From contig OZ320318.1 in the NCBI GenBank assembly GCA_976226885.1, positions 55,924,001 through 55,988,000 on the forward strand: 64,000 nt of DNA, read 5' to 3'. The stretch is from Iphione sp. A-MEVVRFRX5. Taxonomy: Eukaryota. Below the pieces are notes generated by a model. That model was not told where the DNA came from. It saw only the letters and a program-made list of their open reading frames with translations, and did not search any database. The first letter of the stretch is position 1; each line of letters begins with the position of its first letter. The translations under genes were made by a program, and so were the position numbers. Of the stretch, positions 11,421 through 51,804 are shown in pieces.

Positions 11421-12571
11421 ACATACACACATGCACACATACACATGTACACATCAGGAAGACAGAGTGTATAATTAACATATATGGGGATAGATCCCGC
11501 CACCTGTTGTGGATGGGTTTGGGATGTCCGCACCACGCCACTTGTTGCATGCGGACTATTTGCATCCATGGGGATAGCGCTTAAAGGTGCTGCCCCCCTC
11601 CCAGCATGAACACTCAATGGATCTACAACGTAAATACGTAAAATGGCGAATGCCTGGTGTATGTGTACCAAATATAACAAACAAGGTAAAACTTGTGAGA
11701 AGTAGTATAATGCCTTTGACGTGAATTTAATAAACATAAACGTAAGTACCACGTCCAAACGTGCACACTACACTCTACTGATCTAGAAGATGGTCGCAAA
11801 ATAAACCTTATCGGTGATAACTTTATTACATAGAAGAAGGTCGTGAATGACAGACAATGAATGCATATGATAGAATAGAACAAGTCGGCGAATTCGCAAT
11901 CTCCGTATATTTAAATTCAGTCTAGCAAAACAGGTTGAAGATGGATGATGTGGTATATATTCAGTGAAACACTTACAATGGGACAAGCACAGCCCACGTC
12001 TGATAGAATATTGATCACTAGTGTTTCTGATACATATCAAACATATGCTGAAATCAAGCTCGTAGAAAAAGTCTTTAAAAGCATGTGTATGTTTTTATTG
12101 GTTGGGGACTAGGATGGTAATCTGCGGTCCACGTGATAAGATTTATTTTCCTTGCACATCCTAAAAGCAGTTGGTGAGCTTTTTCAAACCAAACGGACCT
12201 GTTATTAGGAAGGGGTTTGGTTTTGTTGATACTGGACGCTTGTATGTGCGGAGTTTCTTTCGCTCCCAACCATCTAGGAACAACTATGCAGGGGTATTTG
12301 TATTCAAACTGAAGGTGATATGAAGATTACTAAGACCCAAAGTTAGTATCAAATATCACTCACAACGTAGTTATCCAGATCACCCCTGTGATTATGTCTA
12401 GCGTGTTGTAATCCTGTTGGTACAACATCTTTAATACGCAAGTGATGGGTTCTTTAACTCTTGTACAAATACTTACATCCTGTAAATTGCGATTTTCAGT
12501 GTGCTAAAGCTCCCTCGTCCCTTCTTTCTCCAAATATTATGCATAAATGGTATGAAACTCCAGTCCTTTTT

Positions 12572-12779
12572 TCAGGAGATGAAAGGCCCTCGTCCATAAT
12601 AGTCTGGGAAAAACCTGACTCGTATATGTGGGTTTGGCCGCTGCAGCAGGTTTCCGGCAAGCCTAAAGTCGGTGGTCTGCGCCAGCTGGCGATAAATTGC
12701 CATGGTGTAAATCCAGGTGAAGATGACGACTATTATCAGGACGCCGACGACCACAATGAGGGTTGTTTGTGTTACAGCG
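12572..12779 (-). CDS. Gene 1 exon 13: TM helix and cytoplasmic tail
   Basis: gtactttcag|C GCT..: AVTQTTLIVVVGVLIIVVIFTWIYTMAIYRQLAQTTDFRLAGNLLQRPNPHIRVRFFPDYYGRGPFIS*. Confidence 0.85.
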
Positions 12780-15700
12780 CTGAAAGTACAGATTTCTACT
12801 CGTCACATCCAATGCATCTATGAGTCAAGAGTTATATGTGCCTACGTCCAATACTGATCTGTGTCCATTATTGCCTTACGTGCTATTAACTTGAGAGAAG
12901 AATACCAGCTGATTTGCAAGAGTTCACCTCATCTCAAAGATCTATGGTATCAAATGGATGTCCGTAAATGCATATGAATTCGACAGAAATACTCACCTAC
13001 AGAGGGGGAAACAGGCTTCATTTATTGCAGGCATTTCCGATGACGTATCTAACAACAACAAATCGTTATCCATCATTACGAACAAGCATTCATAATGGGA
13101 ACATCGAGATTACTGAAAATGGTTTCAATTGACCGATCGACGAATTGCTTCATTTTGCAGTAAAATGATGTTGTTTACACTTGCGGTAAAATTTACGTCC
13201 TTTACATCATGAGTTCACAGGAAAAATTTATAGGACTGAACCTTCTCTGCACATTGAGCTACATTAAGACAGGCTTTTGCTCATTGTCTTCCTTGCTTAA
13301 CCTCCTTAACTTCAGCGTTAATTTGATATGAATTTTATGAAAATCGGACAATTAGAACTGTGTTTTTTCAGGTTGGAAAGACACCTCCTGTCTTGATTTT
13401 TTTACAAGCAGCATGTGCTCTGTCATAGTCTAGGCTAGGACTGTCATAGCCTTGCTACCAGTTCTAACACTCTACCGGGGAAACTGTATATTATTGCTTG
13501 GATAAACAAGTGGGAAGGGTCACCCAACCCAGAAACGGATGTACACACATTCAATTCATTCACAATCAAAATGGAGGTCGATGCTCGACTAAATTTTTCT
13601 ATGTAGAAATTTGGGCAAAATAGATCATTTTCAATTGAACTATGACACAAATCACCACAATATTTTAGTTTCATACCTTTTGGACATGTTTGGAGGCTAA
13701 CTGGAATTATATTTTGATTTATATGTAGCAGCTTACTTAATAGCATCATGTTTGTTGTAAACCAGAAAAAAACAAAGTTTAGGTATACTGGTCATGCTCA
13801 AACCTATATTTTATTGGGTCAAGCATGTGCAGAAGGATATTTCAAGACAGCGTACGTCATGTATATAGATACCATCTTCAAGTCAATAAAGATGAATAAA
13901 TTGTGAGTATAAGACATTAAAATGGAGAAAAATGGTAATTATATCATTGTTAGAACTGTGATTAAGGACAATTCTCTGGAAAGGGATCCCCTGGTCCTAT
14001 CCGGGTCACCTCAGGGAGTGACTTCCTCAACTACCTTCGGTGTCTTTAATTGCTTAGTTACATCCATTGTTTTTTTATGTTACGACGCAATTCTGCAATG
14101 GGTCAATTGGACAGAGGAAAATCCAAAATTGCATCCTTTTGTACAGTGGAACCCTATATCAAGGACACCCTCTACTAAGGACACCCAACCTAAGGCCAAA
14201 AAAAGAATTAGGTGTGTTTCTGGTAATGACCAGCCAAAAACCTAGGTAGGGAGGGGGGTATCTATTTTTTCTTTTTTTGGATATTTTTCTAGTTTCTTCC
14301 TCTGGTTTTCAATAATGATAAAGACAATATAAAGAATTTTGACCAATCTGTATGAGCTTTACAGTTTTTTTGTGAATTTCCATGGATTTTGTTGTTTTTC
14401 ACTGAAATTACCAAAAACATGTGTAATGAAAACACATGTCTAAGGAAGTTCAGCCTTGGAAACTCTTTCGGGCCAAAAAATCTTTAGGTAGGGGTGGGTT
14501 ACCTGAAACACACCTATTTTTGGGGGGGCCTAATTTACAGGTTGCAAACAAAACCAAATCTATATATCATAGTTAAATACTCCTGCTATTAAGGACACCC
14601 CTCTTCATGTATGTACATTCTGTTGTCAGTCCATTTGCTATCTGTAATAGAGAGGTCGACATGTCACAAAGAAGGCAAACTAGACAATTAATAGAAATTG
14701 TTAGCACACAGATATGTGCGCATTAGATATATGGCTCGTAAAATCAGATCAATGATACTTTCCATGACTCAGTGTTGATTTGCCATCACAGATGAGGCGT
14801 GTATAATAATCTGGGGTATGAATTCAGTCACACTGCAAAAACACTTACTTGATATACCATTTATAGCTCTTACTCCATCGAGTATTTCAACGGCTGTGTT
14901 TTCTATAGTTAAGTGGTTATCAAGAGCTCGGATCCTGGACTCGATGGCAGCTAAAAGCGCCGCCTCTTGAGAGACCGACAAAGGTTGCTCTGTCACAAGT
15001 GATGCCACGATTATTGTACTTCCTGTCCTGCAAAATGGTGTTCAAAGAAGAACTAGTTTAACCGGAGGAAGTTTAATCATTAGAACGAGGCTATTCAGTT
15101 AAGTTATTACATGTACACTACCCATATAAAATGTCTGAGAGTAACTCCGGTTCATGCATAGAAATCTCGCAGCTATGCAGTTTTAGAAAAATATTTGTCT
15201 GCACACGAGCTCTGTATGCATGCTGTATGAAAAGATGCAATTATGCAGGAAATAGCAAATTGAGATTCCTACTGTGCTTTTAAGAGGGAGGACCAGACCT
15301 GCCATATGTTTTAAGTAACATAAAAGGTGCATCCATTTTTATCTTTCTTTAAATAATTTCTATAACAAAAAAACAAATATACAGGTATTGATTTATTAAT
15401 ACCCGAAATACCACAACCTAAATCGGGAAACACCTATGTTTTCTTGCCGGACTTCCCATTCCTTTATGATTAATATAAAATGGATAATCATGAAAAGATA
15501 TCTGTAATTGATCTTCGGACAAAATGTCCTTGCACCTAGCCAACAATATACATATATAGAGAGAGATTTAGAGTAAATTAGGTGAAAAGAACAGCATAAC
15601 TCACATGACACCATATGTAATATCAACCACTCCAAGCCTGCTTATCAGATTAATCTCATTCCAAATCTGTAAATACAGTTCGCTGATACGTAAAGGGAAC

Positions 15701-18700
15701 GCAGGTTATTATGGGAACATTTCCAAAGAAATATAATTTCATATCGTTTAATCCTTTGCAGGTACATTTATTCGTTCAGAGAATTTTTCAAACTTTGTTA
15801 TAGATAGGATTGGTCTCCGAAGATTTCTGATACAATCCGGAGCAAAAATTTCAAGAGGGGTAATGTGTTCCTCATAGAGGACCACATTTATACAAATATC
15901 ATATCATTCAAGGGAAAATGAGGGACAGGAAGAACAAAAATCGACTGATTTGTAGTCTTATTTATAGTATTTTAAACGTACCTGTTCTGCAAAAGCTGTC
16001 ATTATTGCAATACTCTCGGGCGAGGAAGTGTTGAATAGAGCTGGAGTCGATGTCAGATTCAACAAGATTGCCACATCCAAATGGGAAGATGCTGTAGTTG
16101 TTTAAAAGGACATCTTTATTAAAAAATAAATAGATCAAACTACATCTTTTTCCTTTTGATGGTGGGAAGGGATTCTTTGTCTGTAAGCTAAATGCAAATG
16201 CAAACCAAACTTTTCTGTATTTTTACGATTAATGTGAAATCTCCATTTACCTGAACAGAAACTGCTGTTAACAAGAAAGTAACCTTGTCGGCAAGCGCAG
16301 GTATAGCTCCCTGGGACGTTCAAGCATATATGCTGGCACGCTTGAGATTGCGATTCACATTCATTTACATCTGTCATCAAAGCAAAACAAGGGTTTTTAG
16401 CTGCTTGCCTGTCTTTCTATTCCTTCGTTTTTCACCCTTTGAACACCGGGACCTACCTCAATGAAAAATACGAGAGGTAACAGGAGGATAATAAAAACGA
16501 TGCTAGTACCGTGTTGTCGAAAGATATTCATTTCGGACTCTTTTTGTGCACTAAGAACATCACACCACCAGCGCCATCTGTACGTCTGTGTATGTAACAG
16601 GGAGACAACTACCCACCGCATTTCTAGTTCTTTGTTATAATTGTTTTGTGTAATACATAGCATGATAGCTTCACGGTACAGTGTGTTTGGCATGTATATG
16701 AAATTTATTGTGTCAAATCTTTAGAAATGTGAAACTGACCAACAACTCTAGGATGGTTTATTCTATAAACAAGGAACTTGCAATGCAATGAGGTGCTCTA
16801 GTCCATTGATTTAGACTTCAGACATGTCTTTGGCCACATGCTTCTATAGTTTACCGCGTCTTTTCAAAAGCCATTGTATGCAATCATAGAAGAGATGAAT
16901 ATGAAAATTGCGTTTCTCCTTAAAAGGAACAGTCAAAGGTGCCATAGTTGTATATTTTGAACAAACCTTCACAGTAGCGTTTGTCTTCTTGCAGCACATA
17001 ACCGTCATAACAGGAGCACGTGTAAGACCCCTCGATGTTTTCGCATCGATGGAAACAACAGCCGTTTATCTGCGCACATTCATCAAGGTCTAAGGTTATA
17101 TAAAACGCAGTGGATTAGAATGCCTCTTACTTCATGAAACAAATCTCATTTCTTATAAATTTACGACATTCAATCTGCATATATATTGAAACGTTTGCTT
17201 GGTTTCTTACCACGACACTGCGTTAAGTTATGTAGAAAGTAGCCCATGGGACACAAGCACAAATACGTTCCAACACTATTAACGCATGTTCCATCGCACC
17301 CATGTATCCCCAGTTCACATTCATCTTCATCTGAAAGGAAAAGTTGGACTGACAACGTTTTAAAAAAAAACTTACAAAACATAGTACGATGAAAGCTACT
17401 CCCAACCCTTGTTCTTTGTCATATGACCTAGAGAGTTTATACGATCATGCACTGCATAATGATGCAGCCCCAACTTCATCTGTGGCCATTTCCCGGCGTG
17501 AGTCACTCACAAACAGCTTTAAACTGAACTATTTTTCTTAGTGTATAGTTCTTTCTCAAAAGCAGTCAAACAGCGTTGAAAAGTCGATCAGACTTTGTTA
17601 TACTGTTGGCTGCTTGGACATAGAAAACGCATCCAGGTCGTGCAAAAGCGTATTAATTAAAGGAATAACATGTCACTTCATGTTCGCGTTTGGTACACTT
17701 TGACCTTGTTGACCTGGCGACCACGTTCCGACAGCCATCATGGCACGTTGGGACTTGGCTTACCTTAGGAAGAGCTGTACATGTGTATGTAGGTTTGGAA
17801 CTTGCAGAGTGGCTGCGCCCAACAGATATCATTCATAGCTGTGGAAGAGTCCGCCATCTTATCTATTTGTTGGTAACCAGGCAGGGGTGTTTTTCTTAAA
17901 CGGCATCATTTTTTTAGCGGAAGGTGGAAAAGTCAAGTATATATAGCTAGTGCGAATTCTGAATCACTTCTATTAGCATACCTAAGCAACTGCGGCCATT
18001 ATTGGAGAGTCTATATCCAGGCGGGCAGCCACAAGTGTAACTTCCCGGCTCGTCATAGCAATCGTATTCGCATCCACCGTTGGCGGTCAGGCATTCGTTC
18101 AGATCTGAATGGTTGGATGATTTCCATTAATTGAATGTAGCATAGCAAACGGGAAAAATGTTGCATATCGTTTCTTAAAATATAAATATTGGAATCATTT
18201 TTTCTCGCAAACCGTTGGCACCCACAGATAATCTTTATTTTGATTGCCTGTGATAATATTTAAAAATATTCTCTGAGACATGACCGACACAATGAGTGTC
18301 TTTCACCCGGAAGAATAAACTCAGTTATCTAAGCGTTTAGTTTGCCTGGTCCCTTCAATTCGTATGTAATCCACACCACAGTAGTAGCTGGGCAAGTACC
18401 TTCTGTCTAGAAGATATTTGCACCTTCTTAAATCTTTCCATGCAAGTGATACTTGCACCATGCAGATCAGCCTATATTGTTCAACATAAAAGGTGCATTC
18501 ATTGTGAGTGCATTGTATGTCTGTCATTGCCAGTAATACTTGCATCGTGTGTAGCTTTCCATGTGTAGGTTCTGTGTGAACTTTGAGGATTTATCTGTGT
18601 AGGTGATGTTTGCAAATATTTATCTATCCAGGACCATACCTAGATGTCTGAGTGGGGGTTCCTGTTGACTATTTAAATGGATTATGCGGCCAAAAGTAAA

Positions 18701-21700
18701 TAATTAATTCCGCATTGTTGTTAGCTTGGAGAGTCAGTCATTAAAACACTCACATGTTATTCATGAATTTAAAAGTAATATATCCTCCAATTAGAAGTAC
18801 ACTACTTTTTAAGGGGTTCGACCGAATACCCTAGTTGCGAGCCTGCTATCTCCTCCTGAATTAGGTGGCCCGAGGTTATGATTTTTTGCATATACATGCA
18901 AATATATGACCTGTATGTGTGTCCAATACTCAGCTCTAGGTTTTGTCTGCATTTGGATATGATTCATTAATTATTTTGATTAATATAACAAACACTATAC
19001 CTTCCACCCTTCTTTCCACAACATATAATGCAGGAGATATTATTCATACATGTTACAATACCCATGGGGATGCTCGTCTTTCGGGAAACGCCATTGTTTG
19101 CCTCAACATCTAGATTTTCCTTCATATGATCATGCAAGTCTAAATTTTCCTTGTGGAAAGCATAATATGAAAACATATATTATATGTTTCTATTACCTGA
19201 ACACGTTGACCCATCGGTATCAAGAAATGACCCTTCGGGGCAGGTACATACGTACGTTCCAGCGGTATTGCTGCAATTGTGACTGCAGGAGTGATTAGTC
19301 AGACATTCGTCGATGTCTACAAAAAGAATATAGTGAACATAATACTTTTCTCATCCGTCATTTTAGGTTCACTGGATTACTTCATTTTACGGTAAAGAAA
19401 CTGTTAGGCTTACTTTACAATCGCAAAAGGATTTTTTTATACTTGTTTGTCAAAGCCTTTGTTATTGATGAGAATGACATATATGAATATAACCTATATG
19501 CAAGCAATTCAAATCCAATTTTTGGGAATTACATCTTCATTTTGGTGGCCCCCCATATCCCCTTCTCTACAACGGTATACACCTGTTACTTTCTGTAAAA
19601 CGTGTCAATTGATCAAGTTGTGTCTTCTCATCTGTGTGTAACGCACCGGTGCAGCCAGGCCATGCGCCAGTGAAGAAGTAACCCACCGGGCACCGTGTAG
19701 TCATTGTTGCGTTGCTGTCACATGAATCTGGGTTAGCACAAGTTCCATTGGGGCAGACACAGAGAACCTGACCTGAAAGATATACAGTCATGTCTCATTT
19801 AGGGAAGTATGATAAGGCTCTAGAGCTGCAACCCAGAGAAACAAGGTAATCCTACTGCAGTCCGGTTTACACGAAATATGAAACATCAATTAAGCGAGTC
19901 ATTCAGAGTCACATAATAATAGTTTAAAGGAAAATTGTTCATTTTGATAGCCACTTTAACGTGCACATTTTTTTCCTGTACTTATGAGCATTCACAACAT
20001 ATTATTATTAGGTTCAGCAGTTCGTAAAATACTTAACCTTGCAGGGTGAAATTCCAGAAATCTACACTCGTCAAAGGCTCGTTCCCGATGAAGCAATGCT
20101 GGCTTAAGACAACATCTTTATCCAACAGGATGCTAAGTCTTGTCGGGTTCTCCGGGTAGAACCTGGCGTCTGGTAGGATAGTGAGCAAACCGCCGGGCAA
20201 ATACTGCACCTCAGACTGTCCGCGCTCTGACGTCACATCGATGACGTACACCGGCATGGCGGTGTCAGTCCTTACGAAGATTATGGTGGCGGGCACGTCC
20301 GGTCGCCGGATGGGGGCATCGAAGAGAACGCTAAAACCCGACTGAAGGGTGAACAGTTCACTGCCTCTCCAAGTGAGCGATTCGGGGACCACCCTCACCG
20401 GTTCCGTTGTAAGCCTAATGCAAACCCAGGGGCTGGGTACTCCCTCGGTCGTGAGTATGTACAAACAGACGTAGGAGGTCCCTACTTCCGCTGAAGGAGA
20501 CCAGGATAGTTCCAATGTGGCAGAGTTAGTATCCGACCTGAAGTTCAATTGGGAGTCCAGGTTTTGTGATGAGGCTATGTGTAACTCCAAGGAACTCACA
20601 TCTATACCTATGTTCTCTATGGTGATTTCCATGGTGCGAGTTGAGTTTGGCGCGGTGCCGGTACACCGCTGTTCTAAGGCATCCGAATCAGCAAATGTAG
20701 GCTGAGAATCACAAGGAACGGAGTCGTTGAAGACATAAATCTGAAACTGCAAAGAAGCTTGGCTCAAGGCAACCGTTGCATTGGACTGTTCGTAGTCTTC
20801 CAGGATCAAGGCAATAATGTGGTACCCCTCAACAACAATGAGGGTATCTACAGTCAGCGTGCAGGCGTCAGTATCAAGAGTGACTCCTGTAACTTCCCCA
20901 CAAGCGTCGGCACACTCATCTGCTGTTGTTCCATAGCGGCAGCGTATAATATCGTGGTCTGGGTCTTCCACCGGAATCTGGAGGACGTGGGTGCAGCCAT
21001 GCGCCAGGCGGATGACGGGGACTAGGACGGCGCGCGGGCTTGAATTCACCGTCGAACTGTCGGCTCGTACCGTCGACGTCGCCTGTAGTTGGAGGCGCCA
21101 TGACCTTGTCGTAAAGGTCGGGCCCCAGCAACAACCGAGAGCTACAAGCTGCACTGGGGAGTTACTGGCGGGTACCAGCGGAATACTACCAACGCCAGCT
21201 GTCCAGTCCCCAGCGGCACTGAAGTCCGTACAGGTGTAATTCAGAGGCCCCACACTGGTCGCTACTTCACAGCCCTGGAAGCAAAAGAGGAGGTGCTCGG
21301 CGTTTGTGCTTCCACTCTGAATGGTTGCCGTGTCGCAGAAATGCAGAGGATGACTTCTTTGCCAGAACAATCGGTAGAATATTTGAATCTGGAATTTAAA
21401 TCAAGCCGTTGGTTGTAACAATGCTTATGCGAGAGAGGGTTCAGATGTAAATACACATTCTGAAATTTCTGTAGGGTTTTGACCATTGAGTTTTCCACTT
21501 CTGCGGACAATTCAGCTGGGAACCAACACATGCCTGATTTCTATGATGTTTTTTTAATCTTGTTTAACTTGAATTCAGATTAGAAAGACTTAAAGCTGTT
21601 TCTGGGGTAAATTTCTTTTGCTTAAACTGGATTGATTGAGACCCCCAAATCAGAGGGGTTAAACCTGTTTGGGCCCTTTTCACAGTATCTAGACATCACA

Positions 21701-24700
21701 ACATTTCTGACTGATTGGTTCCAGTAATTTTATTTTTCCTAAACTATGAAAAATTAGTATGCTTACACCGAAATGTCATTTGATGTCTATTTCAATTTTA
21801 AAAATGACAAATTTCTGGAATTTCTTTAAGTTATCATTCTATTTCTTTGTAAAGACAGTGGTATAAATCAACCACTCCATGAAGAACTCCTTATGCTGTA
21901 TGCTTTACTGAGGCTAGCACACACATAAAAAGGAGTGTAATTAATTGACCTCACTATAGTATTGTATTGATATGAATCTTTTAATTATCAAATCCTGTAA
22001 AGGAAATGTTAAAAAGAGTTCAACAGGCAATATCCCTATCAAGGTTATTCCCAAGCTTAACATTCCTCTTAACGCCATTTGCTGAAACATCCTGGAAACC
22101 AGGCAATAAAGTTTAATGAAAAGACTGTCCCCTATTGAGAACTAACATGTACATGTATATTTGTGAGAAGTGATGGAAATGTGGGTAGCCAATCATTTGG
22201 ATCTTTATGTTAAATAACCATTTAAGAGTCCTAAAAATAAAGGAAATGAAAGTCTACTCAGGAAAACTTTGTTTGCTTATTTGTCATGAAGAATCTGTTG
22301 CAAAAGTCAGTTGTGGTAAATTTTGTTCCTAATAAGGATATTTGTGTCATATGATATGTAAATGACCTAATTGTACGCCATTCTGGTGAAATGAGTTTGA
22401 AGTCAGAAAAAATCGAAGTTGTTTACATGTTTCATTGAAAAATGCAATTGCTTAGCTTTCTAATGAGGTATATTAGGCAAAATATGGTGATGTGACAAAG
22501 TAATGTAGTATTGCAGTAAACCACAAATGAGAAACTAAGATGTTTGTCTTTGAAGATTCATAGGTGCACTCTACCATGGTCTTCTAGAATAACCACAGCA
22601 ACACATATTTCTTATTTCTCAATCTTCCTGAAACTGTACATAGTCTATCTTTGCTATCTAAGCTATAAAATACAAAGAATCATGTATTTTGAGACATAAT
22701 ATTTTATTTATGCCGGCCTTTGAAAACATGAGAAATTCTCCCTCTGGAATGGAAGCTCAACCTAGAAAGGCAAGCACAAAGTATCACAGCACCTTCATCT
22801 AGAAGCTTAAAAGTGGCTGTTGGTTGACCATAGGTTGAAAAAAAGTCTGTGTAAGTGTTCACAATTCTCTTGGGCTGATTAAAAGTGCAGTCTTGGAGGT
22901 TATAATCATAACTTAGGAAATTCTGCAGCAATATGATGCTCTACAAATATTGCATGATATATGAATTTAATGTGGGTGACGTTGTGGTGTAGATGACAAA
23001 ACATGAAGAATTAACAAAAACAAAGTATGTATCATTCACGACTCATTCTTAGAGTGAGGATGACGTCACAGTGGTATTTCAGACTGGTGTCCCGACTTAT
23101 ATACAGGGCAGGGTGCCAGGTGTGGAGGTGAAAGACAATGGACTTCTCTCTTTGAGCTATTATACTGTTTAGTCACATAATAATTATTTGGCATTGTTTT
23201 CAATGCTGGTTCTGACATTATGATGAGCACACATATAGAACTACCTTAAGATGCAGTGCATATGTCAAAATAATCATTAGTTTGTTTTCACCAGCCCCCA
23301 GAGTTCACATTCGGATATGCAGAAACTCCCCAATTATCAGCCACTCTTCACCTCTACAGTATTTTCACTGAATTACAAAGTTTAGAAAAAGTTTTCAATC
23401 TATACACTAATTCAGTTATTTAGTTTATCAATAAAACCGTGAAATGAGCACAGTGGCTTTATATGATATCAATGAAATCTCTATGAAAATTGGCTTGACA
23501 ACTCATTGTTTACACTTTACTCACCACAAGTACCCTGATTCCCCACTCCAAGAATTGTAATAAGCTTAGTTAACCATGTGGGGTTTTTTATCTGTGACCA
23601 TTGCAATCATTTAGCATAAACATTACCACTAAATAAATCAAGCAATACGATAACTGGAAAAGGGACACCTCTTGCACAATTTGTACGTTTTCATATGCTT
23701 GTCTCATCAAGCGTTTCGTTAATGTGTAGATTCTGCAAACTTTAAACAATCATGCGAATACTAAAAGAAAAACGTCATTAAACATGATTATTCACATATC
23801 CTTTACATCTTTCGGGCATATATTTCTGCTGTATATATTCTATTTTCCTGCATTTCTGACCTTGTTTACAGATTTCCCTGCCTGACAACAATGAAGAAAA
23901 TCGATTTTTTCCAATCCCACAGAGACGGTACACACATGAATATATCCTCCCTTAGTTGTTACGCAGGTGCCTTTGGGGAGCGCAATGACGCGTACACGTG
24001 CCCGGAAGCACATACACACATATATCATGCCTTATATACAAATGCGATGCAATTTCACAAATGTCGTCATCTCTCCTCACTTCACAGCTTAATTGTTTCT
24101 GAAATTGTCCAGACAAACTTTGTTGCATCAAACAGAATTCATTATCTCACCAACATAGCGACAGGACTGCTCTAGTATGTATGAACCCAAATGGCATGGG
24201 ATAAGAATCTTGTGCACAATACTTTTAGAAGTACGTTGCTTACATCGGTTGTTTTTGCCTCCTTTAGCACCACATTCTGAACATAATGTGCATTCTTCGT
24301 CGCAAGTGTCTCTGCAACTACCAGCAACAGCTGTGGCAACTTGTTTTACCCTCTCCTTGAATATTTCGAAATGAGGCCGATTTAATAAGGTCTGCTCGTG
24401 ATTAAGTTACCAATAGTTTAATTAGGTCCATAAAAGCCAATATTCTTGGTGAAATCGGTGTCAATATTGATGGACTGAGAGGAGGAGTCCTTGGTACGAG
24501 GATTAACAAAGTAAGAGGGTTTGACTGAGACCTTGTCCACCTTACAGGACAAGGGGGCGAAGACACTTTTAGGGAGATCCTAGAGAAACATGCCTAGAGA
24601 TAACCTAGGGAAACTTTTAGAAAATAAGCAAGGAACAGTTCAGTCGAAATAATGACCAGAAAAAGACAAAGCGAACGGGGAAATATAAAGCTTGTCAACA

Positions 24701-27700
24701 AAGGTGAACGTGAGCAGAGGAACACATAGACAGCTAGAGAGGCAAACAGACAGGTAGGCAAGAACGTGACGATAAGAGGTACGTAAATGCGCAAATTGCC
24801 ACCTACATTGCAATCTTAGTGACATGGGCGGGAAACATTTGCCAGCAAATTCAGGATATTAACGGTCTGTCCTTTGCCATAAATCTGGCTTGAATGTCGT
24901 GGGTCTTGGGTAGCTATTATGTGTAATTTAATGATGATTATCTCGATAACATCAGGCATAGACAGCTAGATTTATGCCTCTCCCAGCAAAGGTGAAAGAA
25001 TGTACCAAATAATCAAGTGACAGGGCGGTGTCCACGTGTTTCTAATCTGCTTTTTGTCTGTTACATTCATAGTTGCAGGTGTTCATTTATAGGCAAGCAG
25101 ATGCATTCCAAGATCTAATTATGGAACAGCGTGTGCCCGTTAACACTTCATATATAACACCGACCGTTTCTTTTGATTACAACTCGTACAGAAACTTCAC
25201 CGGCATGAAGGAAATCAAGACATAGATCACGGTATTTAAAGCATACCACTTAAGAGTACAATGAGGGTAGTTCATGAGACAAATGAAGACAAGTCAGCTA
25301 CGTACTTTACAACACCTGTGTGAAGTCGACGAGGACAAGTGCCACGAAAAGATACGGAAGTATCTTAAAACGTGACAATCATAGAGCCTGGTGAGTATGA
25401 ATAGCTCAATAAACACTTTCAAACAGCACGTACCAGAGAGAGTCGGAGATGGAAAGTTACAGAAGGAGACAGACTTTATTACGAGAACAGGTTACGGTAA
25501 AAATGGAAATAATTACTGGAATGAGAAGTAGACGCAAACTATATTTTTGCATTTCTGTTCATTTTAGATGTGCCTAATTTGGACAGAATACATAAAATCG
25601 TACATACAAATATATGCCTGACCGACGCTGAAAGGGACACTGATAGATACTAACACTATAGTCGAAACAGCATTTTTTATCAGACTCTCTAAATAGAGGA
25701 TACCAATTAATGCAATAGGAGTTTAAGGATTACCATGGTTAATCCAGCCGGTTATATTCTTACCAGGCATCAGTGCAGTCTGTAAAAGACTACTTTCTTG
25801 TTGAGTACGGGCATCATGGACATTCCCGAACATGTTTTTTTACCTTATTCTTTTCGACGGGTCTTTTTGTGCCTCAGTAATATTTTTCTCTTAAAATCTC
25901 TTTTAAGGTTGAAGGCTTTTATTCAGCCAGTCTCCGGTGGATACATAGAGGTTTTCTTGGTGAGTGTAGAACATGACGCATGTATAGAATTAGAAATACG
26001 TTTAAGTAAATACATGATGAAAAACTGCCAAGTGATATCTGTGAAAAAGACATTCAGTTGTGGATTACCAATAAATTGTTCTGATATCAGGCTTTTGTAT
26101 TCTATCACGGTGTTGGGGATCACAAGTTTAAATATTATCTCACAGCAATGGAGAAGATAGAGGCGTGTGCCATCCATCCATGATAGCAGAGAATTATGGA
26201 AAAGGCAGGAGATAAGTTACACATGGGCATGATCATAAATGAATCAGAATTTTAAATGTACTATTAACACTTTACTACAGAGTAATTGATTTGCAATAGC
26301 AATCCGACTCAGAAATGCTCAACAGAGGTCTGTATAAATTATTAACTGGGGGGGGGGGGAGGTTAGGGTGGTGGTGGGTGGGATGCACGGGGCGAAGTAA
26401 GGCCATGGTAGTAGTCAGTAAGAAATCAGTCTAGAGCCAGTTGTTGGTGGACCTAGAGTGGACCTTGGCTGGTGGAGTGGGAGCTCCGGATTGTGGGGAG
26501 AACATGCCAATAAAGGCACAAATGGGAAGTGGGCGAGATGAAGCAAGAAAATGCCATAAGTAGGGAACTTGTTTGGTGTTGCTAGCAACCAAGTTTGGTT
26601 GGGACTGCCCCCAAACGTTCGTAGCAGTTGATTGCCACCGCTCCATCTTCTTCAGGCAGGTAGTAATCCTATGTGGGCACAATAATGCCCATCCACAGCA
26701 CATGAGACTGAGTCTACCCCGTCTGCCAACACCGACAAGGATTTGGACAGACCATTAATTGATGCCATTCCTCAGGAAGATATTCAAGAACTGAGCGAGT
26801 CTCTTGATGTGACAATTACATGGTATTTTTTGTGTCCCAGGTTGGAACAGCCAGTTACCCTCGAACTTGAGTGCTCTTCAAATCCCTGGTGACAGTCGGA
26901 GGCACCCGTTAATCCGGTCAGGCAATGAGTTCCACATGGCTACCCCTCTGTACCTGAGGCTCTGTGCATATTCTGATCTCTTGGGCTTATTCAGTGCTCC
27001 TCTTAGAGCAGCGCCCTGTCTCCTTTTCATTCTTGCTGCATGCTCCAGGAGTACCAAGGTGATGTATCCTGTGTGTGACCATTAGGGCCGATTTCCTTAA
27101 TTGCATTGGTTTCCGTGCATTTTGATCGGTTTGATCCGTTTTTATTAAACTAATGGTCTACAGTGTGAGGTATTCCTTACCTGCATGTGCGTTGACATCT
27201 GTTGATGTCCAGTTGATGTGCATTGACCATTATCAGTCCCTGACCGATATTTTTCCACATGGCTACCCCTCTGTACCTGAGGCTCTGTGCATATTCTGAT
27301 CTCTTGGGCTTATTTAGTGCTCCTCTTAGAGCAGCGCCCTGTCTTCTTTTCATTCTTGCTGCATGCTCCAGGAGTACCAAGGTGATGTATCCTGTGTGTG
27401 ACCATTAGAGCCGATTTCCTTAATTGCATTGGTGTCCGTGCATTTTGATCGGTTTGATCCGTTTTTATTAAACTAATGGTCTACAGTGTGAGGTGTTCCT
27501 TACCTGCATGTGCGTTGACGTCTGTTGATGTCCAGTTGATGTGCATTGACCATTATCAGTCCCTGACCGATATTTTTCCACATGGCTACCCCTCTGTACC
27601 TGAGGCTCTGTGCATATTCTGATCTCTTGGGCTTATTTAGTGCTCCTCTTAGAGCAGCGCCCTGTCTTCTTTTCATTCTTGCTGCATGCTCCAGGAGTAC

Positions 27701-30700
27701 CAAGGTGATGTATCCTGTGTGTGACCATTAGAGCCGATTTCCTTAATTGCATTGGTGTCCGTGCATTTTGATCGGTTTGATCCGTTTTTATTAAACTAAT
27801 GGTCTACAGTGTGAGGTGTTCCTTACCTGCATGTGCGTTGACGTCTGTTGATGTCCAGTTGATGTGCATTGACCATTATCAGTCCCTGACCGATATTTTA
27901 ACACATATGGACAGAAACACACAGTAGGATAGAGGATGTGCCCTTTGAAGCAGGCGAAAGTAAGTTGGACATACTTTTTTCAGTGACATTCACCAGTTTA
28001 TACTTTTTACAGTGACATTTACCAGCTTTTTCCTTTTTCCAGTGACATTCACCAGTTTTTATATTTTTTCCAGTGACATTTACCAGTTTCTATCACACAG
28101 CCTCACGCATCCTCCATAAGCACCCCCACCATGAGGCTGGATTAAGGGAAAATCCATGTAAAATGCAACAGTAGGACATTTGTTTCCATCCTCACAGGAG
28201 TTCTGTTCAGCTTGACATCCAAAGCGATTCCAGCTGCCTTTCCCATAGACACATTTTGACTCACTTAAGAAGAAGCCTTCAGCTTTGCACCAACTCTAGC
28301 AGGAACAACCACTGTGTGGTCATCAGCACGGAGAACCGTATAGCAGCAGTCTGAAATTGTAGCAGTAATTACATTTATCACAAGATTAAATGCTCTCGGG
28401 CCGAATACAGAGCCCCATGGAATCTCCTGGCAGAGAGTCCTTAATGATGATAAGTGGCCTGAGCAGCACACATATACCTGCCTACCATCCAGGTAACTAA
28501 CGACAAAGTTGACCACATTCCATTCAGCTGCCACACAGTGTATAATGCTGCAATGTGGCACCAGATCGAATGCGTTGGGCAAGTTAAATACCACTAAGCA
28601 GCAGTAAAATCCACTATTCTTCCAGTCATAGATTAGGATTGCTGTCATGGCTGTTTCTGTGTTCCTTCCAGAATGAAGGCCATGTTGAGAAGACCCTGTA
28701 AAACCTTGGTCCTCAATGTTCTGCATCAAAGTTTTGGTGAACCAGGCCAGATGATAGTGTCCTGGCTCTTTTGTTTCCCTTTTTGTGAACTGGAAAAATG
28801 CAGGTAATATTCCATGAGCTTGGATATGTCCCTGTTTGGTAGATACTTAGGAATAACCAGAATACATTATCTGTCATCATCATCAAGAGCGGTTTCAGGA
28901 TTTTCAGTGGTACGCCATCTATTTTAAATTATTTGTGCAGCTTCTGTCTACTTAGGATCTAGCATACCTCTATCAGACTTGTCTTTAGTTCAAATCCATC
29001 TCAAAACAGTTCATGACCATGTCTGCTCTTAGACAGTCGTGTAGGATATGGATATCTGCCTTAGCCCACTGTCAGACACTGATCCTCTCAGTTTTGACAA
29101 ATTTCTTCCCCTTATGAATGAAGATCCCAACTGGCATTTGATTACAAACCAGTCAAGTCGGTGGACCCAGAGATGTGCTGCACCGATCCTCTTCCCAATA
29201 TGAGATGGGTGATACTCCATCAATGTTTGCAGATTCTCCATAAGGCCAAAATATAGGTGTGTTTCTGGTCGGGACCAGCCAAAAACCTAGGTAGAGAGGG
29301 GGGTATCTTTTTGTTTTTTTAATTTTTTTCCACTTTCTTCCTCTGGATTTCAATAATAATCAAGACAATGAGAAGAGTTTTGACCAATCTGTATGAATTT
29401 TACTGTTTTTAGTGAGTTTCCATGGATTTTGTTGTTTTTCTACTAAATTTACTAAAAATATGTGCCATGAAAACAATATATCTAAGGAAATTCAGCCTTG
29501 GAAACTCTTTGGGGCCAAAAAATTGTTAGGTAGGGTGAGGTTTTACTAGGTAGGGGTGGGTTACCAGAAACACACCTATTATTTTTTTGCCTAATCATAG
29601 TTGAAGCCCCCAAAGACTACGTCAACTGTCTTTTGTCCATAGGTGAAAGAGCTACGTGTGAAAAACAACTGCGTGTCGGTGATCTCCCCAAAATTGTTCT
29701 GAAATCATATCCCTATCGGAGATGCTTTTCCACCGAATATCCATGTTAGATATATCCTGTTTTTGAGTCAAAGTGTAGCCCGTGAATTATTACCAACGCT
29801 TTTATGCTACAGGTACTGAAGCGTTATAGCCATTGCTAAGTTAAGTCCAGTTAGTTCAGCAGAACATGTGTGTTGTCCGTAGATTTACCATGCCTCCTGT
29901 CTAGTAATGTTTATATTTCATCTACCCCCAAAATCAGGGATGAGTGAACCGACTACATTTGGCTACCTGGCCTGTGCAGGGGAGACCAGTTTCTACGATT
30001 ACCAGTTACAGAGCACAGGAAAGCAGCCATCAGGACTCATTGACGGAGACAGAAATTCCCGGCTATTCCACTAGCGACCTTGTAACGAAGCAGGAGCATG
30101 GTCATTGAGCTGTATCACAACTATGTCCTGGTCTTGTCCAGCAGAAAAGGGTGTCACTCCCAAGTAGTTTTGGCTTTATTTCCATGTAACCGTGTTTTCT
30201 GTGAATGTTTTCCATACATGTGTCTGTAATTTTTGGCACCCATGCTTATGGACTGGAGTGCTTTCATGTGCCTGTTTCCACGGGCAAAAGATAAGGAGAT
30301 GTCCTAACATACATGGAGCAGGGAATACGTATTTTGGGCAAACCAGTACGTTGAAAATGGGTACAGACAACAAAGGAATGCACAGGTAAGTTATACTTAT
30401 AGACACTTACATCGAATGGCAGAATTCGTGTATAAATGGCATTAATCACTGTATAATGAGGAGTGTGATATGCTCAAATCCAGTTTTCAATTCAGTTTAT
30501 TCAATCAGGGTACAGCTACAATATATAATGGTACCTGACTCTCTTTGTCCTAGCTATGTTGTGTCACTGATGTTCCAACGGACACAAGACTCGCGTACCC
30601 GCATGAGTCTCATGAAGTTGATAACCATAGATTTTAAAATTTAGAGAAACGTGCATGAAAAACATGGACCAGAAACAGGGGTAAGATGTACATGGAAACT

Positions 30701-31261
30701 AAACCTAGATCCGATGTGAAGTAGCGACAGAGCAGCGGATAAGTGGCTGCCACAACGAATGTTACTAGTGGTTCTCAACACATAGCGCAAACGGTATTCT
30801 TAGGGCATTAGAAACGACTCGGTTCCCATCTTAAAAGCGAGTGTCTGCTGTAGTCAGGTCTGTGAAATCACGAATTCAAAATCGAGTCTAGGAAATACGT
30901 AATAGAAGGCTCAAACCTCTCAGTTTTATGTCTTCCATGATTATCATATACATTGTACTTATAATGCATAATGAATAAAAACACAGTGCTTCCATGGAGA
31001 AACCCTTATGTAACGCCACTACTGTGGGTTTTGTTAAAATTTATCTCGAGGTCTAATCTGTGAATTCAAGTTGGTATATTGTAGGTAAAGTCGCATTAAG
31101 TTCAAGTCGATGAAGTCACTTTCCCTGTTTTCATGTAATAGTCCAGACGGCATGCTTCTCCACAAAGGTCCTAGGATGCCCCAAACGGACGCCCATTTAT
31201 AAATGTTACACTTGAAGACAGCCACATCTGCACAGACAATTAAACGTGCACTCACTCACTC

Positions 31262-31327
<66 letters not shown>

Positions 31328-31516
31328 AAGATGATATGGACCCACCTCTCCATCCGACAAGCCGTCCACGTAAATAATTCCCCCTCGGAAGTTCTGTGGC
31401 GTGCCGAACGTTGGGAGTAAAGCTACCATCACCAGAATGACGGTCGGCAGGAGCCCGACAGAGATCCCTCCGCCTGTGGCCATATCGCCGTGGTTATGGG
31501 GCTCGGGGCTTAGCAT
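12572..31516 (-). CDS. Gene 1 (complete, 13 exons, 954 aa): type I membrane protein, SP - Sib/T9SS-cargo-like N-module - Big_5-like Ig - EGF-like - 5x cbEGF - SEA-like - TM - short tail
   Basis: join(complement): 31346-31516, 20038-21388, 19647-19772, 19197-19316, 17982-18104, 17211-17330, 16967-17089, 16251-16370, 15982-16091, 15605-15666, 14849-15027, 12997-13048, 12572-12779. All introns are GT-AG, phases are continuous, and the total is 2865 nt = 955 codons with no internal stop. Confidence 0.85.
12997..13048 (-). CDS. Gene 1 exon 12: juxtamembrane linker
   Basis: ttgttgttag|AT..: (N)TSSEMPAINEACFPLC(S); donor AG|GTGAGT; 52 nt, phase 1->2. Confidence 0.75.
14144..14663. mobile_element. 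Tc1/mariner (Tigger/pogo-like) MITE, interrupted
   Basis: ta|cagtggaaccctatatcaaggacacc left end, repeated aaggacacc, eroded right end taatagagaggtcgacatg; split by the insertion at 14194-14530. Confidence 0.55.
14194..14530. mobile_element. PIF/Harbinger-like MITE family H1, copy A, TSD TAA
   Basis: taa|ggccaaaa..aggtgtgtttctggtaa ... ttacctgaaacacacct..ggcc|taa; colinear with 29244-29591. Confidence 0.85.
14849..15027 (-). CDS. Gene 1 exon 11: SEA-like domain with GSTII motif
   Basis: ttttgcag|G ACA GGA AGT..: TGSTIIVASLVTEQPLSVSQEAALLAAIESRIRALDNHLTIENTAVEILDGVRAINGIS; donor A|GTAAGT at 14848 gives phase 1, matching exon 12. An alternative GTAAGA at 14873 would break the frame. Confidence 0.8.
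15605..15666 (-). CDS. Gene 1 exon 10: SEA-like domain, middle
   Basis: tatttacag|ATT TGG..: IWNEINLISRLGVVDITYGV(M); donor AT|GTGAGT; phase 0->2, exactly bridging exons 9 and 11. Confidence 0.78.
15982..16091 (-). CDS. Gene 1 exon 9: SEA-like domain, first part
   Basis: caactacag|CA..: ASSHLDVAILLNLTSTPALFNTSSPESIAIMTAFAEQ; donor CAG|GTACGT; phase 1->0. Confidence 0.8.
16251..16370 (-). CDS. Gene 1 exon 8: cbEGF 5
   Basis: gatgacag|ATG..: DVNECESQSQACQHICLNVPGSYTCACRQGYFLVNSSFCS; donor TCA G|GTAAAT; 120 nt. Confidence 0.93.
16967..17089 (-). CDS. Gene 1 exon 7: cbEGF 4 (7 Cys)
   Basis: Not in the minus-strand ORF track. ccttag|ACC..: [41 protein letters not shown]; donor GAA G|GTTTGT; 123 nt. 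Confidence 0.92.
17211..17330 (-). CDS. Gene 1 exon 6: cbEGF 3
   Basis: cctttcag|ATG..: DEDECELGIHGCDGTCVNSVGTYLCLCPMGYFLHNLTQCR; donor CGT G|GTAAGA; 120 nt. Confidence 0.93.
17982..18104 (-). CDS. Gene 1 exon 5: cbEGF 2
   Basis: Not in the ORF track. attcag|ATCTG..: DLNECLTANGGCEYDCYDEPGSYTCGCPPGYRLSNNGRSCL; donor TTA G|GTATGC; 123 nt. Confidence 0.93.
19197..19316 (-). CDS. Gene 1 exon 4: cbEGF 1
   Basis: Not in the ORF track. ttttgtag|AC ATC GAC GAA TGT = DIDECLTNHSCSHNCSNTAGTYVCTCPEGSFLDTDGSTCS; donor TCA G|GTAATA; 120 nt, phase 1-1. Confidence 0.93.
19647..19772 (-). CDS. Gene 1 exon 3: atypical 6-Cys EGF-like unit
   Basis: tctttcag|GT CAG..; GQVLCVCPNGTCANPDSCDSNATMTTRCPVGYFFTGAWPGCT; donor ACC G|GTGCGT; 126 nt, phase 1-1. 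Confidence 0.85.
20038..21388 (-). CDS. Gene 1 exon 2 (1351 nt): Cys-rich N-module, cadherin/Ig-like and Big_5-like beta domains
   Basis: Acceptor ttccag|ATT CAA ATA (IQIFYRLFWQR..), in frame with track ORF 20033..21370; donor CAA G|GTTAAG, phase 1; motifs CTDFS, GCCW, NSSP, VEDPDHDIIRCRY, LEDY, WNFT; 16 Cys. Confidence 0.92.
26931..27899. repeat. 3 x 323-bp near-identical tandem array
   Basis: tccacatggctacccc at 26931, 27254 and 27577 (period 323). Units 2 and 3 look identical; unit 1 differs at about 6 sites. Confidence 0.97.
27975..28090. repeat. ~30-bp minisatellite x4
   Basis: cagtgacatt at 27981, 28010, 28040, 28071. Confidence 0.9.
29244..29591. mobile_element. PIF/Harbinger-like MITE family H1, copy B, TSD TAA
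   Basis: taa|ggccaaaatataggtgtgtttctgg ... gaaacacacctattatttttttgcc|taa; aligns end to end with copy A. Confidence 0.85.
31255..31328. repeat. Compound (CT)n(CA)n microsatellite at the start of gene 1 intron 1
   Basis: Direct read; begins ~17 nt inside the donor, reading (UG)n(AG)n on the transcript. Confidence 0.95.
31346..31516 (-). CDS. Gene 1 exon 1: signal peptide + NFRGGII motif
   Basis: MLSPEPHNHGDMATGGGISVGLLPTVILVMVALLPTFGTPQNFRGGIIYVDGLSDGE; hydrophobic core; donor GAG|GTGGGT, phase 0. The start could be the second Met (31483). Confidence 0.85.
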
Positions 31517-43980: not shown

Positions 43981-44469
43981 TCATAAGTTCGTTTCGTCCA
44001 GCTTGCGGCGGATGGGCAGTTCACGCTCGCGGTTGTAGTTGTAGTTGGAGGCGTTGTTGTTGTTGACAGCCACCGGTGCGGCCTGGTAATCGACGGTACT
44101 GCCGGCCTCCTCCGATACTGACCCGTTAGGTACCCCTCCGCCGCCGCTGCCGCCGCCGCCGCCGCTGCCGCCACCGCCGGGGATCACTTTGGTGATCGCC
44201 GGCAGCACCCGCACCTCCGACCCGGCGTCGTTGAAGACGCCATCGTTCTCGCTGTCGCTATCCATGTTGGCCAGGCGCTGCTCGACGCCGATCAAACGCG
44301 ACACGATATTGAACGGCATAAGATCCTTCCGGGTGATGATACCGACGACGCGGTTGCGGCTGTCGACAACCATGAGATGCCTTAAGCCCATTGTGCGGAA
44401 GACGGAGTAGGTGCGCGTGAGGGAATGATTTTCGTCCACCTTGGGAGCTGACAGGTTCACGTAGTTATT
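43981..44469 (-). CDS. CLC last exon: CBS2 + low-complexity tail ending DETNL*
   Basis: gtcaacag|AAT AAC TAC; within ORF 43981..44526; stop TGA. Confidence 0.92.
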   Translation of the reverse strand, partial: NNYVNLSAPKVDENHSLTRTYSVFRTMGLRHLMVVDSRNRVVGIITRKDLMPFNIVSRLIGVEQRLANMDSDSENDGVFNDAGSEVRVLPAITKVIPGGGGSGGGGGSGGGGVPNGSVSEEAGSTVDYQAAPVAVNNNNASNYNYNRERELPIRRKLDETNL

Positions 44470-50400: not shown

Positions 50401-51765
50401 CTGTAAAACGTTAATCAAAATATTTAGTTGTGGTTGTAGTCTGAAGATTCTTGTATTAACTCTTTTACCAGCGAAACGACTTCAATATCTGAATGCATTA
50501 AAATGTTTACAAGACGAAGCTGTCTATAGCCTTATGAAACATGAATTAGTTATGGATGGGGGTAACATTTCGTAAATATACTCTCAACAATGTTTATCTC
50601 CATAACAATGGAAACCAAGTAATATACACAAATTTTATTATATAATACAAGCAATAATATATAATGTTACTACGTAATAAATTGTTGCATATTTGAACAA
50701 GAAGTGGACCATTGTGGCATTATAGATGAGATGAGAGCAATTTTCCGACCGCCCATAAGTAAAAGATTTTCACTAACAATGACTTACGATGATGACGGTG
50801 ATGGCGAGCGTCAGTCGAGTGACGCCTCCCAACAGGCTGCCAGCCCCCAGCACTGCCATCACACCGGGGTCCATCCATTCCCAAGACTTTTCGATCGGCA
50901 CTTCAAACCCAGTCACCAACTTGTAAAGGTCGAGAATTCCAACACCTAAAGCACGCCCATATAAAGCACCGGAGATCCTGGTGGGGGTGGGGGAGAAATA
51001 AATGCTTAGAGCTATTTTAGGCGAATAACGACCAAACAAGTGTAGATATTATTCACACACATAAATACATGTATGGACCTATTTCAGTTCTAAATAACTG
51101 CATGCATTTAATATAATAACTGAAATATCATAGTTTACTATTACGTAGGTTTATATACATATATTCTTCACAGGCCATGGCATTTGCCATGGCATTTGTA
51201 TGTCATTTGTATGTTGTTTCCTCACTAGGGGACGTTACATAATTAGCATTATCAATATCGTGCTTTAAAAGAGATCGAACATCTCAGAACAAAGTCAGCA
51301 AATCCCAAAACCCGACTGTCTCACCATGTACTTCTTAGAGTGCATCTAAACTAAAGGAAATGTAAAAGAAAAATGTAAAACAATTAGTGAGACTGTTTTA
51401 AACTTGTCCTGCTACACTCCGATCACCGCTATCGTGGAAATATAACACTTACAAGAGAGAATAGCTTTAATATTTACATATACGATAGTTGATGTACAAT
51501 CTGTTTTGACTTACACTTCAGATATGCTGCTTGGTGGCACAGTTATTCAGATTCGCTGCTTGGGGGCAATGTTACACTATTGGTTTAGGAAATTATCACA
51601 ATTTTATAAATAAGAAATTAGCTGAAGTGTCTTAAACAAATGAAAATATTAAACAGCAGCTTTATGTAGGCCTATGCCAGCATGCAACTTTGTAGGTCTG
51701 TAAGTTCGTAAAGGGAGGGAGGGAGACCTGTATGCGAGTACCCCTGTGCTCGCATATATGATATC

Positions 51766-51804
<39 letters not shown>

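Follow-up and report, generated by a model that had tools for sequence, protein, structure and literature searches.

A predicted membrane protein of Iphione sp. with a Sib-type N-terminal head on a cbEGF rod, and the invertebrate proteins that carry a related head

The closest described counterparts of the protein discussed here are the Sib proteins of Dictyostelium, which in this integrin-lacking amoeba are the main receptors for adhesion to substrates and particles (PMC9197732). They possess an extracellular VWA domain, a glycine-rich transmembrane segment and cytosolic NPxY motifs involved in talin binding (PMC9197732). In this work we analyzed a stretch of 64,000 nucleotides from Iphione sp. 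A-MEVVRFRX5 (assembly GCA_976226885.1, contig OZ320318.1, positions 55,924,001 to 55,988,000; hereafter the window), which carries on its minus strand, from 31516 to 12572, what is probably an intact gene, its product being a type I membrane glycoprotein of 954 aa with a Sib-type head placed on a rod of calcium-binding EGF-like (cbEGF) modules, and with a presumable role in adhesion or recognition. SibA-E (the "integrin beta-like proteins A-E") likewise have a type I topology and, once mature, begin with the same multi-Ig head; they differ from the Iphione protein in having VWA, NPxY and the glycine-rich transmembrane segment, while the latter has an EGF/cbEGF rod and a possible SEA module, and in having the His of the HFRGG motif, which is replaced by Asn here. 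No VWA match was obtained with Pfam on the exons of this gene (exon 12 was not scanned), the cytoplasmic tail (YRQLAQTTDFRLAGNLLQRPNPHIRVRFFPDYYGRGPFIS) contains NPHI and has neither an NPxY nor any other recognised motif, and the transmembrane stretch has a single Gly; hence, the gene is not a Sib orthologue, although it has one module in common with the Sib proteins.

The initial annotation of this DNA had proposed a frame-continuous model of 13 exons, and the independent chaining of splice sites by phase led to the identical figure: a coding sequence of 2865 nt for 954 aa plus stop, with canonical splice sites at all introns (AG...GT), consistent phases and no in-frame stop in any exon. The predicted order of the protein is a signal peptide, a 466-aa N-module, an EGF-like module, five cbEGF modules, a juxtamembrane module of ~115 aa, one transmembrane helix and a tail of 40 aa. 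Exon 1 (31516-31346) includes the start codon, the signal peptide (..LLPTVILVMVALLPTFG) and the first strand of the head, and ends in phase 0 at the donor GAG|GTGGGT; exon 2 (E2, 21388-20038) encodes the four head domains and ends in phase 1 at the donor CAA G|GTTAAG.

The head and its relation to the Sib proteins

The search with phmmer of E2 against 1.84 billion representative sequences retrieved 663 matches with E<=1e-3, 313 of which had E<=1e-10 and 53 E<=1e-30, the best one reaching 1.3e-116. Forty-eight relatives with the N-terminus present were then available for comparison, and in 14 of them Pfam detected the family PF24907, SIBA-E_N (Integrin beta-like protein A-E, N-terminal). Three of these matches lie above the gathering score of 28.1 bits, i.e., those of P0027 (30.9), P0088 (33.8) and P0058 (33.8); they cover positions 1-117 of the 119 of the profile, start at HFRGG and occupy residues ~28-170. 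The same three proteins are matched by E2 over the whole head, with E values of 8e-38 (P0027), 4e-30 (P0058) and 2e-25 (P0088). The fact that relatives of E2 pass the SIBA-E_N threshold shows a real homology, established transitively, of the N-module of this gene to the head at the N-terminus of the Dictyostelium Sib proteins, a resemblance that the initial annotation had put forward. Further Sib-type matches were found below threshold: PF24908 (Ig_SIBA-E_2nd) occurs at the position of the second domain in P0054, P0057, P0083 and P0028 (14-17 versus 27.8 bits), and PF24910 (Ig_SIBA-E_3rd) in two of 60 relatives (best E 1.4e-4; the coordinates of these matches were not obtained). At the position of the fourth domain, Big_5 was detected in P0005 (336-450), P0024 (347-456) and P0044 (371-458).

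The architecture of the head agrees with this picture. When E2 was folded with AlphaFold2 using a family alignment of 60 sequences, the model consisted of four beta-sandwich domains (predicted local distance difference test, pLDDT, 94.6; predicted template-modelling score 0.88), the single-sequence run being uninformative (pLDDT 33). Domain 1 (21056..21388, minus strand as for the whole gene; E2 residues 1-~111) is the rest of a SIBA-E_N-type beta-sandwich, with conserved C..C, CTDFS and DW, the first strand of the head being NFRGGIIYVDGLSDGE on exon 1, followed by IQIFYRLFWQRS on exon 2. It is followed by domain 2 (20705..21055, residues ~112-228), with an NSSP linker and an acidic cluster, by domain 3 (20399..20704, residues 229-330), an Ig/filamin-like sandwich, and by domain 4 (20038..20398, residues 331-450), a Big_5-like Ig domain of bacterial type. 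The comparison of the model with known structures by VIA-align placed many Ig/filamin domains on residues 229-330 (Z 8-9.3) and gave a Z of 9.7 for residues 330-450, while Foldseek against the PDB retrieved only generic multi-Ig chains (TM-score ~0.2). Overall, the fold searches yielded generic Ig, filamin and CopC-like sandwiches, mostly on domains 3 and 4, with domains 1 and 2 barely covered, and offered no functional lead.

The residues that are invariant in the family alignment (A1) gather at the junction between domains 1 and 2 and within domain 2; they are N115-S-S-P118, D142, D144 and D146, together with C150-R151, E158-C159 and E197-D198. All the invariant or near-invariant residues of this region are kept in the Iphione gene. 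By analogy with the interdomain site of cadherins, it is probable that the acidic cluster (the NSSP linker, D-x-D-x-D and E-D) binds Ca2+. The succession of a conserved I-N-S-S-P linker, a D-P-D-G-D cluster and, within the sandwich that follows, an E-D pair resembles the interdomain Ca2+ sites of classical cadherins and of CADG/PKD-type domains; this likeness is at the level of motifs only, since no Pfam match to cadherin, PKD or He_PIG was found on E2 or its relatives.

The mature N-terminus is also strongly conserved. In the relatives, the pattern S-H-F-R-G-G/A-x-I-x-W-K-P...I-E-I-x-Y-R-I-S-W-R-R-S ("SHFRGG..I.W") follows directly on the signal peptide; among the 48 relatives, the His is present in 45 (~94%), the Phe in 46 and the Arg in 44. 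The motifs quoted in the initial annotation are all found in the Iphione gene, that is, NFRGGII..GE|IQIFY..W.R, then NSSP, then DPDHD. Hence, the His of HFRGG is an Asn in this gene; it is an Asp in its closest relative, and the Trp of the first strand has become Val in the Iphione gene. The two sequences form a divergent subgroup. The possibility that the conserved His acts as a His-brace, as in lytic polysaccharide monooxygenases, was also considered and was ruled out by the Asn of this gene and by the lack of a second invariant His, as well as by the preceding pattern of A/G/S/C then S/T, which fits a cleavage leaving a Ser-His start.

Animal proteins with the same head

The matches to E2 correspond to a family with no fewer than 663 clusters (50% identity), so that this gene is not a one-off. 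E2 alone retrieved nothing relevant from Pfam (either whole or as four overlapping pieces, E<=10), from NCBIfam or from the sequence search of the PDB; a word-index protein search gave no match with E2 and only eight unnamed fragments of open reading frames (ORFs) with alignment A1. The null result of the word index with E2 has to be ascribed to a failure of sensitivity, since the exhaustive HMMER search found 663 relatives. The named relatives are either "uncharacterized" or called after their C-terminal domains (DMBT1-like, CSMD3-like, SVEP1-like, mucin-2-like), and database names derived in this way hide the shared head.

The 19 named clusters that we sampled all belong to cnidarians (Nematostella, Acropora, Montipora), bivalves (Crassostrea, Saccostrea, Mercenaria, Sinanodonta), echinoderms (Anneissia, Antedon, Acanthaster) or crustaceans (Macrobrachium, Halocaridina). 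None of the 19 is from a vertebrate and none is characterised, in agreement with the earlier remark that the combination matched no recognisable vertebrate receptor. Proteins with the same head include Nematostella LOC116611783, Acropora millepora LOC114963338, Crassostrea virginica LOC111105368, Anneissia LOC117108507 and Acanthaster LOC110991064, as well as the "DMBT1-like" and "CSMD3-like" proteins of Mercenaria. They resemble the Iphione protein in having a head of ~450 aa right after the signal peptide (E 1e-25 to 1e-50 versus E2) and differ from it in their partner domains and in their length, which reaches 4,069 aa; the best annotated match is 31-35% identical. The head caps stalks of very different composition, such as SRCR plus ZP, EGF plus SRCR, Sushi plus HRM, cbEGF plus ZP, Ig, teneurin-type EGF and long arrays of bacterial-type Ig domains, and junctions between the head and (cb)EGF modules are present in the RefSeq models P0033, P0070 and P0058. 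The cassette of five cbEGF modules, SEA-like module and transmembrane segment was found in none of the invertebrate relatives examined. Mosaic surface proteins capped by this head at the N-terminus are thus widespread in cnidarians, bivalves, echinoderms and crustaceans.

The closest relative, P0001, is encoded at a locus of an ENA assembly (L001) and is 47% identical in E2. This locus exhibits the same exon split, with an upstream exon for the signal peptide and xFRGG (..FATDFRGGLIFVDPLPGGQ; DFRGGLIFVDPLPGGQ lies on this exon) followed by the big exon; downstream of the latter, on the same strand, lie an EGF-like exon, two cbEGF exons and an exon for a transmembrane segment plus tail. The same-strand order of head, EGF and transmembrane exons supports the existence of a single gene. 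Furthermore, many ORF-level matches begin exactly at the boundary of E2 (query residue 2), which fits a conserved intron at this point.

Two relatives deserve a separate mention. In P0003 (RefSeq, SVEP1-like, 3,259 aa) the head is internal (residues 1651-2032), which may mean either that the gene model is fused or that the copy is truly internal. P0059 is a single intron-less ORF of 4,045 aa (L002 10001-22138, found also at L003) with the same head and its own signal peptide; it also carries DUF7619 and weak TSP1, CARDB and RHS matches, and the surrounding DNA, which is represented in two ENA assemblies, is gene-poor, sparse and eukaryote-like.

Rod, juxtamembrane region and genomic context

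Downstream of the head, exons 3 to 8 are all of phase 1-1, as the initial annotation had stated for six EGF exons. Exon 3 (19772-19647) encodes a divergent EGF-like module which, despite its six cysteines, gave no Pfam match and has no Ca2+ motif; it has a weak counterpart in L001, at 11838-11924. The five following exons reach, one by one, the gathering score of EGF_CA (PF07645, 27 bits), with values of 28.0-38.2 bits, accompanied by FXa_inhibition and cEGF matches; they are exon 4 (19316-19197, 33.4 bits, starting with DIDEC), exon 5 (18104-17982, 28.0 bits, DLNEC), exon 6 (17330-17211, 33.9 bits, DEDEC), exon 7 (17089-16967, 32.0 bits, DLDEC) and exon 8 (16370-16251, 38.2 bits, DVNEC). Each of them thus combines six cysteines, a D-x-D/N-E-C start and a score above the Pfam threshold, as expected of calcium-binding EGF modules.

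The three parts of the juxtamembrane module are encoded by exons 9 (16091-15982), 10 (15666-15605) and 11 (15027-14849), all of them chained by phase, which together specify ~115 residues with several N-x-S/T sites for N-glycosylation and include the stretch ..DITYGVM-TG-STIIVASLV. The self-cleavage motif of SEA domains is G|SVVV, and a certain likeness to TG-STIIVASLV can be recognised. In the membrane mucins with SEA (MUC1, MUC3, MUC12, MUC13, MUC17) and in modules of the agrin and enteropeptidase type, one finds a similar juxtamembrane position, a length of ~115 aa, EGF neighbours and a G-S-(T/V)-(I/V)-(I/V)-V-like motif; in contrast to them, the Iphione protein has no counterpart of the mucin repeats and no match to a SEA profile. 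Indeed, exons 9, 10 and 11, taken singly, gave no match to SEA (PF01390), to other Pfam families or to PDB sequences, and the module has no detectable conservation in L001, so that the SEA domain of the initial annotation is unproven.

Exon 12 (13048-12997), entered in phase 1 and left in phase 2, encodes a linker of 16 aa (TSSEMPAINEACFPLC). Among the candidates lying between exons 11 and 13, that is, exons above the splice-score cut-offs with phases matching both neighbours, it is the only one with a strong donor (8.5 versus <=5.0 for the other four). Exon 13 (12779-12572) encodes a hydrophobic stretch of ~23 residues, corresponding to the transmembrane helix TLIVVVGVLIIVVIFTWIYTMAIY, followed by the 40-aa tail (..RPNPHIRVRFFPDYYGRGPFIS) and a TGA stop. 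A similar exon for a transmembrane segment plus tail is present in L001 at 21109-21369 (tblastn E 0.003 against that single locus).

As for the genomic surroundings, tblastn of 152 relatives revealed in the window neither a second copy of the head nor matches to exons 9-13. Reading through the donor of exon 2 leads at once to a TAA (CAA GGT TAA, 20036-20038), so that intron retention would yield a secreted, head-only protein of 507 aa; this stop looks like a chance occurrence, since in L001 the corresponding frame is open for ~65 more codons. The first intron, of ~10 kb, harbors a tandem repeat of 323 bp in three copies with 98% identity (26930-27906) and, adjoining it, the degenerate fragment of an ORF resembling a reverse transcriptase, on the minus strand (28265-28846), both representing transposon debris. 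A (GA)n/(CA)n microsatellite (31251-31328) starts ~15 bp past the donor of exon 1, and a long (GT/CA)n tract is present in L001 too, in another intron (14532-14905). The upstream neighbour, on the same (minus) strand, is a gene with exons of a chloride channel/transporter of the ClC-6/7 type (43981-60351), with CBS-domain sequence in the ORFs 43981-44526 and 46120-46557 and a further motif in the ORF 59803-60351.

Alternative readings and significance

On the whole, the data are best accommodated by an all-beta head of four domains, of which the first would be of the SIBA-E_N type, the second and the third Sib-type Ig-like domains and the fourth Big_5-like. This head would represent the ligand-binding end of the protein, and the cbEGF rod might hold it ~15-20 nm from the membrane, above the juxtamembrane module of ~115 aa (possibly SEA-like), the single transmembrane helix and the short tail. 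The protein would then serve in extracellular adhesion or recognition and, given so short a tail, is unlikely to signal enzymatically. Several points weigh against such an interpretation. The loss of both the His and the Trp in the first strand could mean that the function of the head has been altered or lost in this gene. E2 itself, the first strand of which sits on exon 1, gives no SIBA-E_N match, so that the link with the Sib proteins runs through the relatives, and the Sib matches of the second and third domains, being sub-threshold, are weaker. In addition, searches and folding were carried out on single exons, the splice joints are predicted, no public RNA run being listed, and "SEA-like" is a plausible, unproven label for the module of exons 9-11.

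One alternative is that the model wrongly joins two genes, one for a secreted head (exons 1-2) and one running from the EGF exons to the transmembrane segment (exons 3-13), an idea to which the 507-aa product of an unspliced exon 2 would lend itself. We consider this highly improbable: the phase 1 end of exon 2 fits the phase 1-1 EGF exons, exon 3 carries neither a start codon nor a signal peptide, the exons of L001 follow one another in this order on one strand and end in a transmembrane exon, and annotated relatives join the head to EGF modules. A different question concerns the origin of the head, which the initial annotation had compared with the N-termini of Bacteroidota proteins exported by the type IX secretion system (T9SS). 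Starts of the type H-x-x-G-G-E-I-x-Y occur in some Bacteroidota proteins, and domain 4, as well as downstream domains of some relatives, matches Big_5, Big_13 and Big_3_3, which might speak in favor of an acquisition from bacterial surface proteins (T9SS cargo) of this kind. Nevertheless, no T9SS/Bacteroidota family of NCBIfam was matched by E2 or by the 48 relatives, a comparison that is insensitive to distant relatives (on the latter, NCBIfam gave two unrelated single-member matches, E ~0.002-0.006). When 185,579 prokaryotic species genomes were scanned with the patterns V[SNT]DPD[GN]D[IT][IV] and DT[GSN][QKR]INSSPR and the tight alignment A3, an approach equally insensitive to distant relatives, a single locus was confirmed; it encodes an archaeal PKD-type domain that has only the generic DPDGD stretch in common with the head. 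Moreover, the gene has no T9SS C-terminal domain, ending instead in a transmembrane segment and tail, and the intron-less head ORF P0059 sits in sparse, eukaryote-like DNA. The proposed link is therefore not borne out, and a Bacteroidota origin of the head appears very unlikely. As to the archaeal locus itself, it belongs to a metagenome-assembled genome of Thermoplasmatota (L004 1600-3573) and encodes an FG-GAP/PQQ-like propeller followed by the PKD-type domain (..VNHTFCVTVNDPDGDTVFCLWEWGDGT..).

Two further readings concern the function of the protein. According to one of them, the head family would have diversified as a recognition module in the innate immunity of invertebrates and this gene would be a membrane-anchored member of it, acting as a pattern-recognition or microbe-binding receptor. 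The size and the sequence diversity of the family (663 clusters) and the joining of heads to innate-immune partners such as SRCR (DMBT1-like) and Sushi are in agreement with this possibility, which we regard as rather unlikely: no lectin or known domain for the binding of pathogen-associated molecular patterns was found, and the head is also joined to partners without immune specificity (ZP, teneurin-type EGF, HRM and GAIN-type domains). The other sees in the protein not a receptor but a part, structural or shed, of an apical matrix such as mucus, cuticle, shell or the organic matrix of a skeleton; the ectodomain would be built into extracellular material after its release at the juxtamembrane module, where G-S-T-I-I-V resembles a SEA self-cleavage site. 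The ZP polymerisation modules of P0010 and P0070, the Montipora cluster member called "ZP domain-containing protein-like", another relative named mucin-2-like and the short tail devoid of recognised motifs would fit this scenario. It is, on balance, improbable, since ZP, VWD and mucin-repeat domains are all absent from this gene, the SEA module is unproven and the transmembrane exon is kept in the closest relative.

Adhesion or recognition by a membrane-anchored Sib-type head is thus the interpretation that we prefer, and it raises the issue of the history of this module. In the literature searched, we found no paper on the animal head family, on "HFRGG" or on these Pfam entries. The name "Integrin beta-like protein A" has been assigned automatically in transcriptomes of a clam and of a sea cucumber (PMC7430831, PMC6429463), to sequences that may belong to this family; this shows that the similarity to Sib has surfaced in annotation pipelines without being analysed. 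As a tentative scenario, we suggest that the Sib-type head might be an ancient adhesion/recognition module common to Amoebozoa and animals, which diversified in cnidarians and marine invertebrates, was lost or changed in vertebrates and has gone unstudied in animals; the Iphione gene would then be a simple and tractable representative of an unrecognised class of metazoan receptors.

The gain for this gene is modest, as it is one divergent member whose function is only inferred, and the head shared by amoebozoans and animals, unstudied in the latter, is of more interest than the single locus. It is the Sib head itself, and not just generic parts such as VWA or EGF, that recurs atop hundreds of invertebrate surface proteins, and this points to a widely used binding module of animals which, in the literature searched, has no ligand, solved structure or describing paper. 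If the head proved to be a Ca2+-dependent unit of adhesion or recognition, it would define a new family of receptors for cell adhesion or immunity in invertebrates and would provide a concrete link between the adhesion machineries of amoebozoans and animals.

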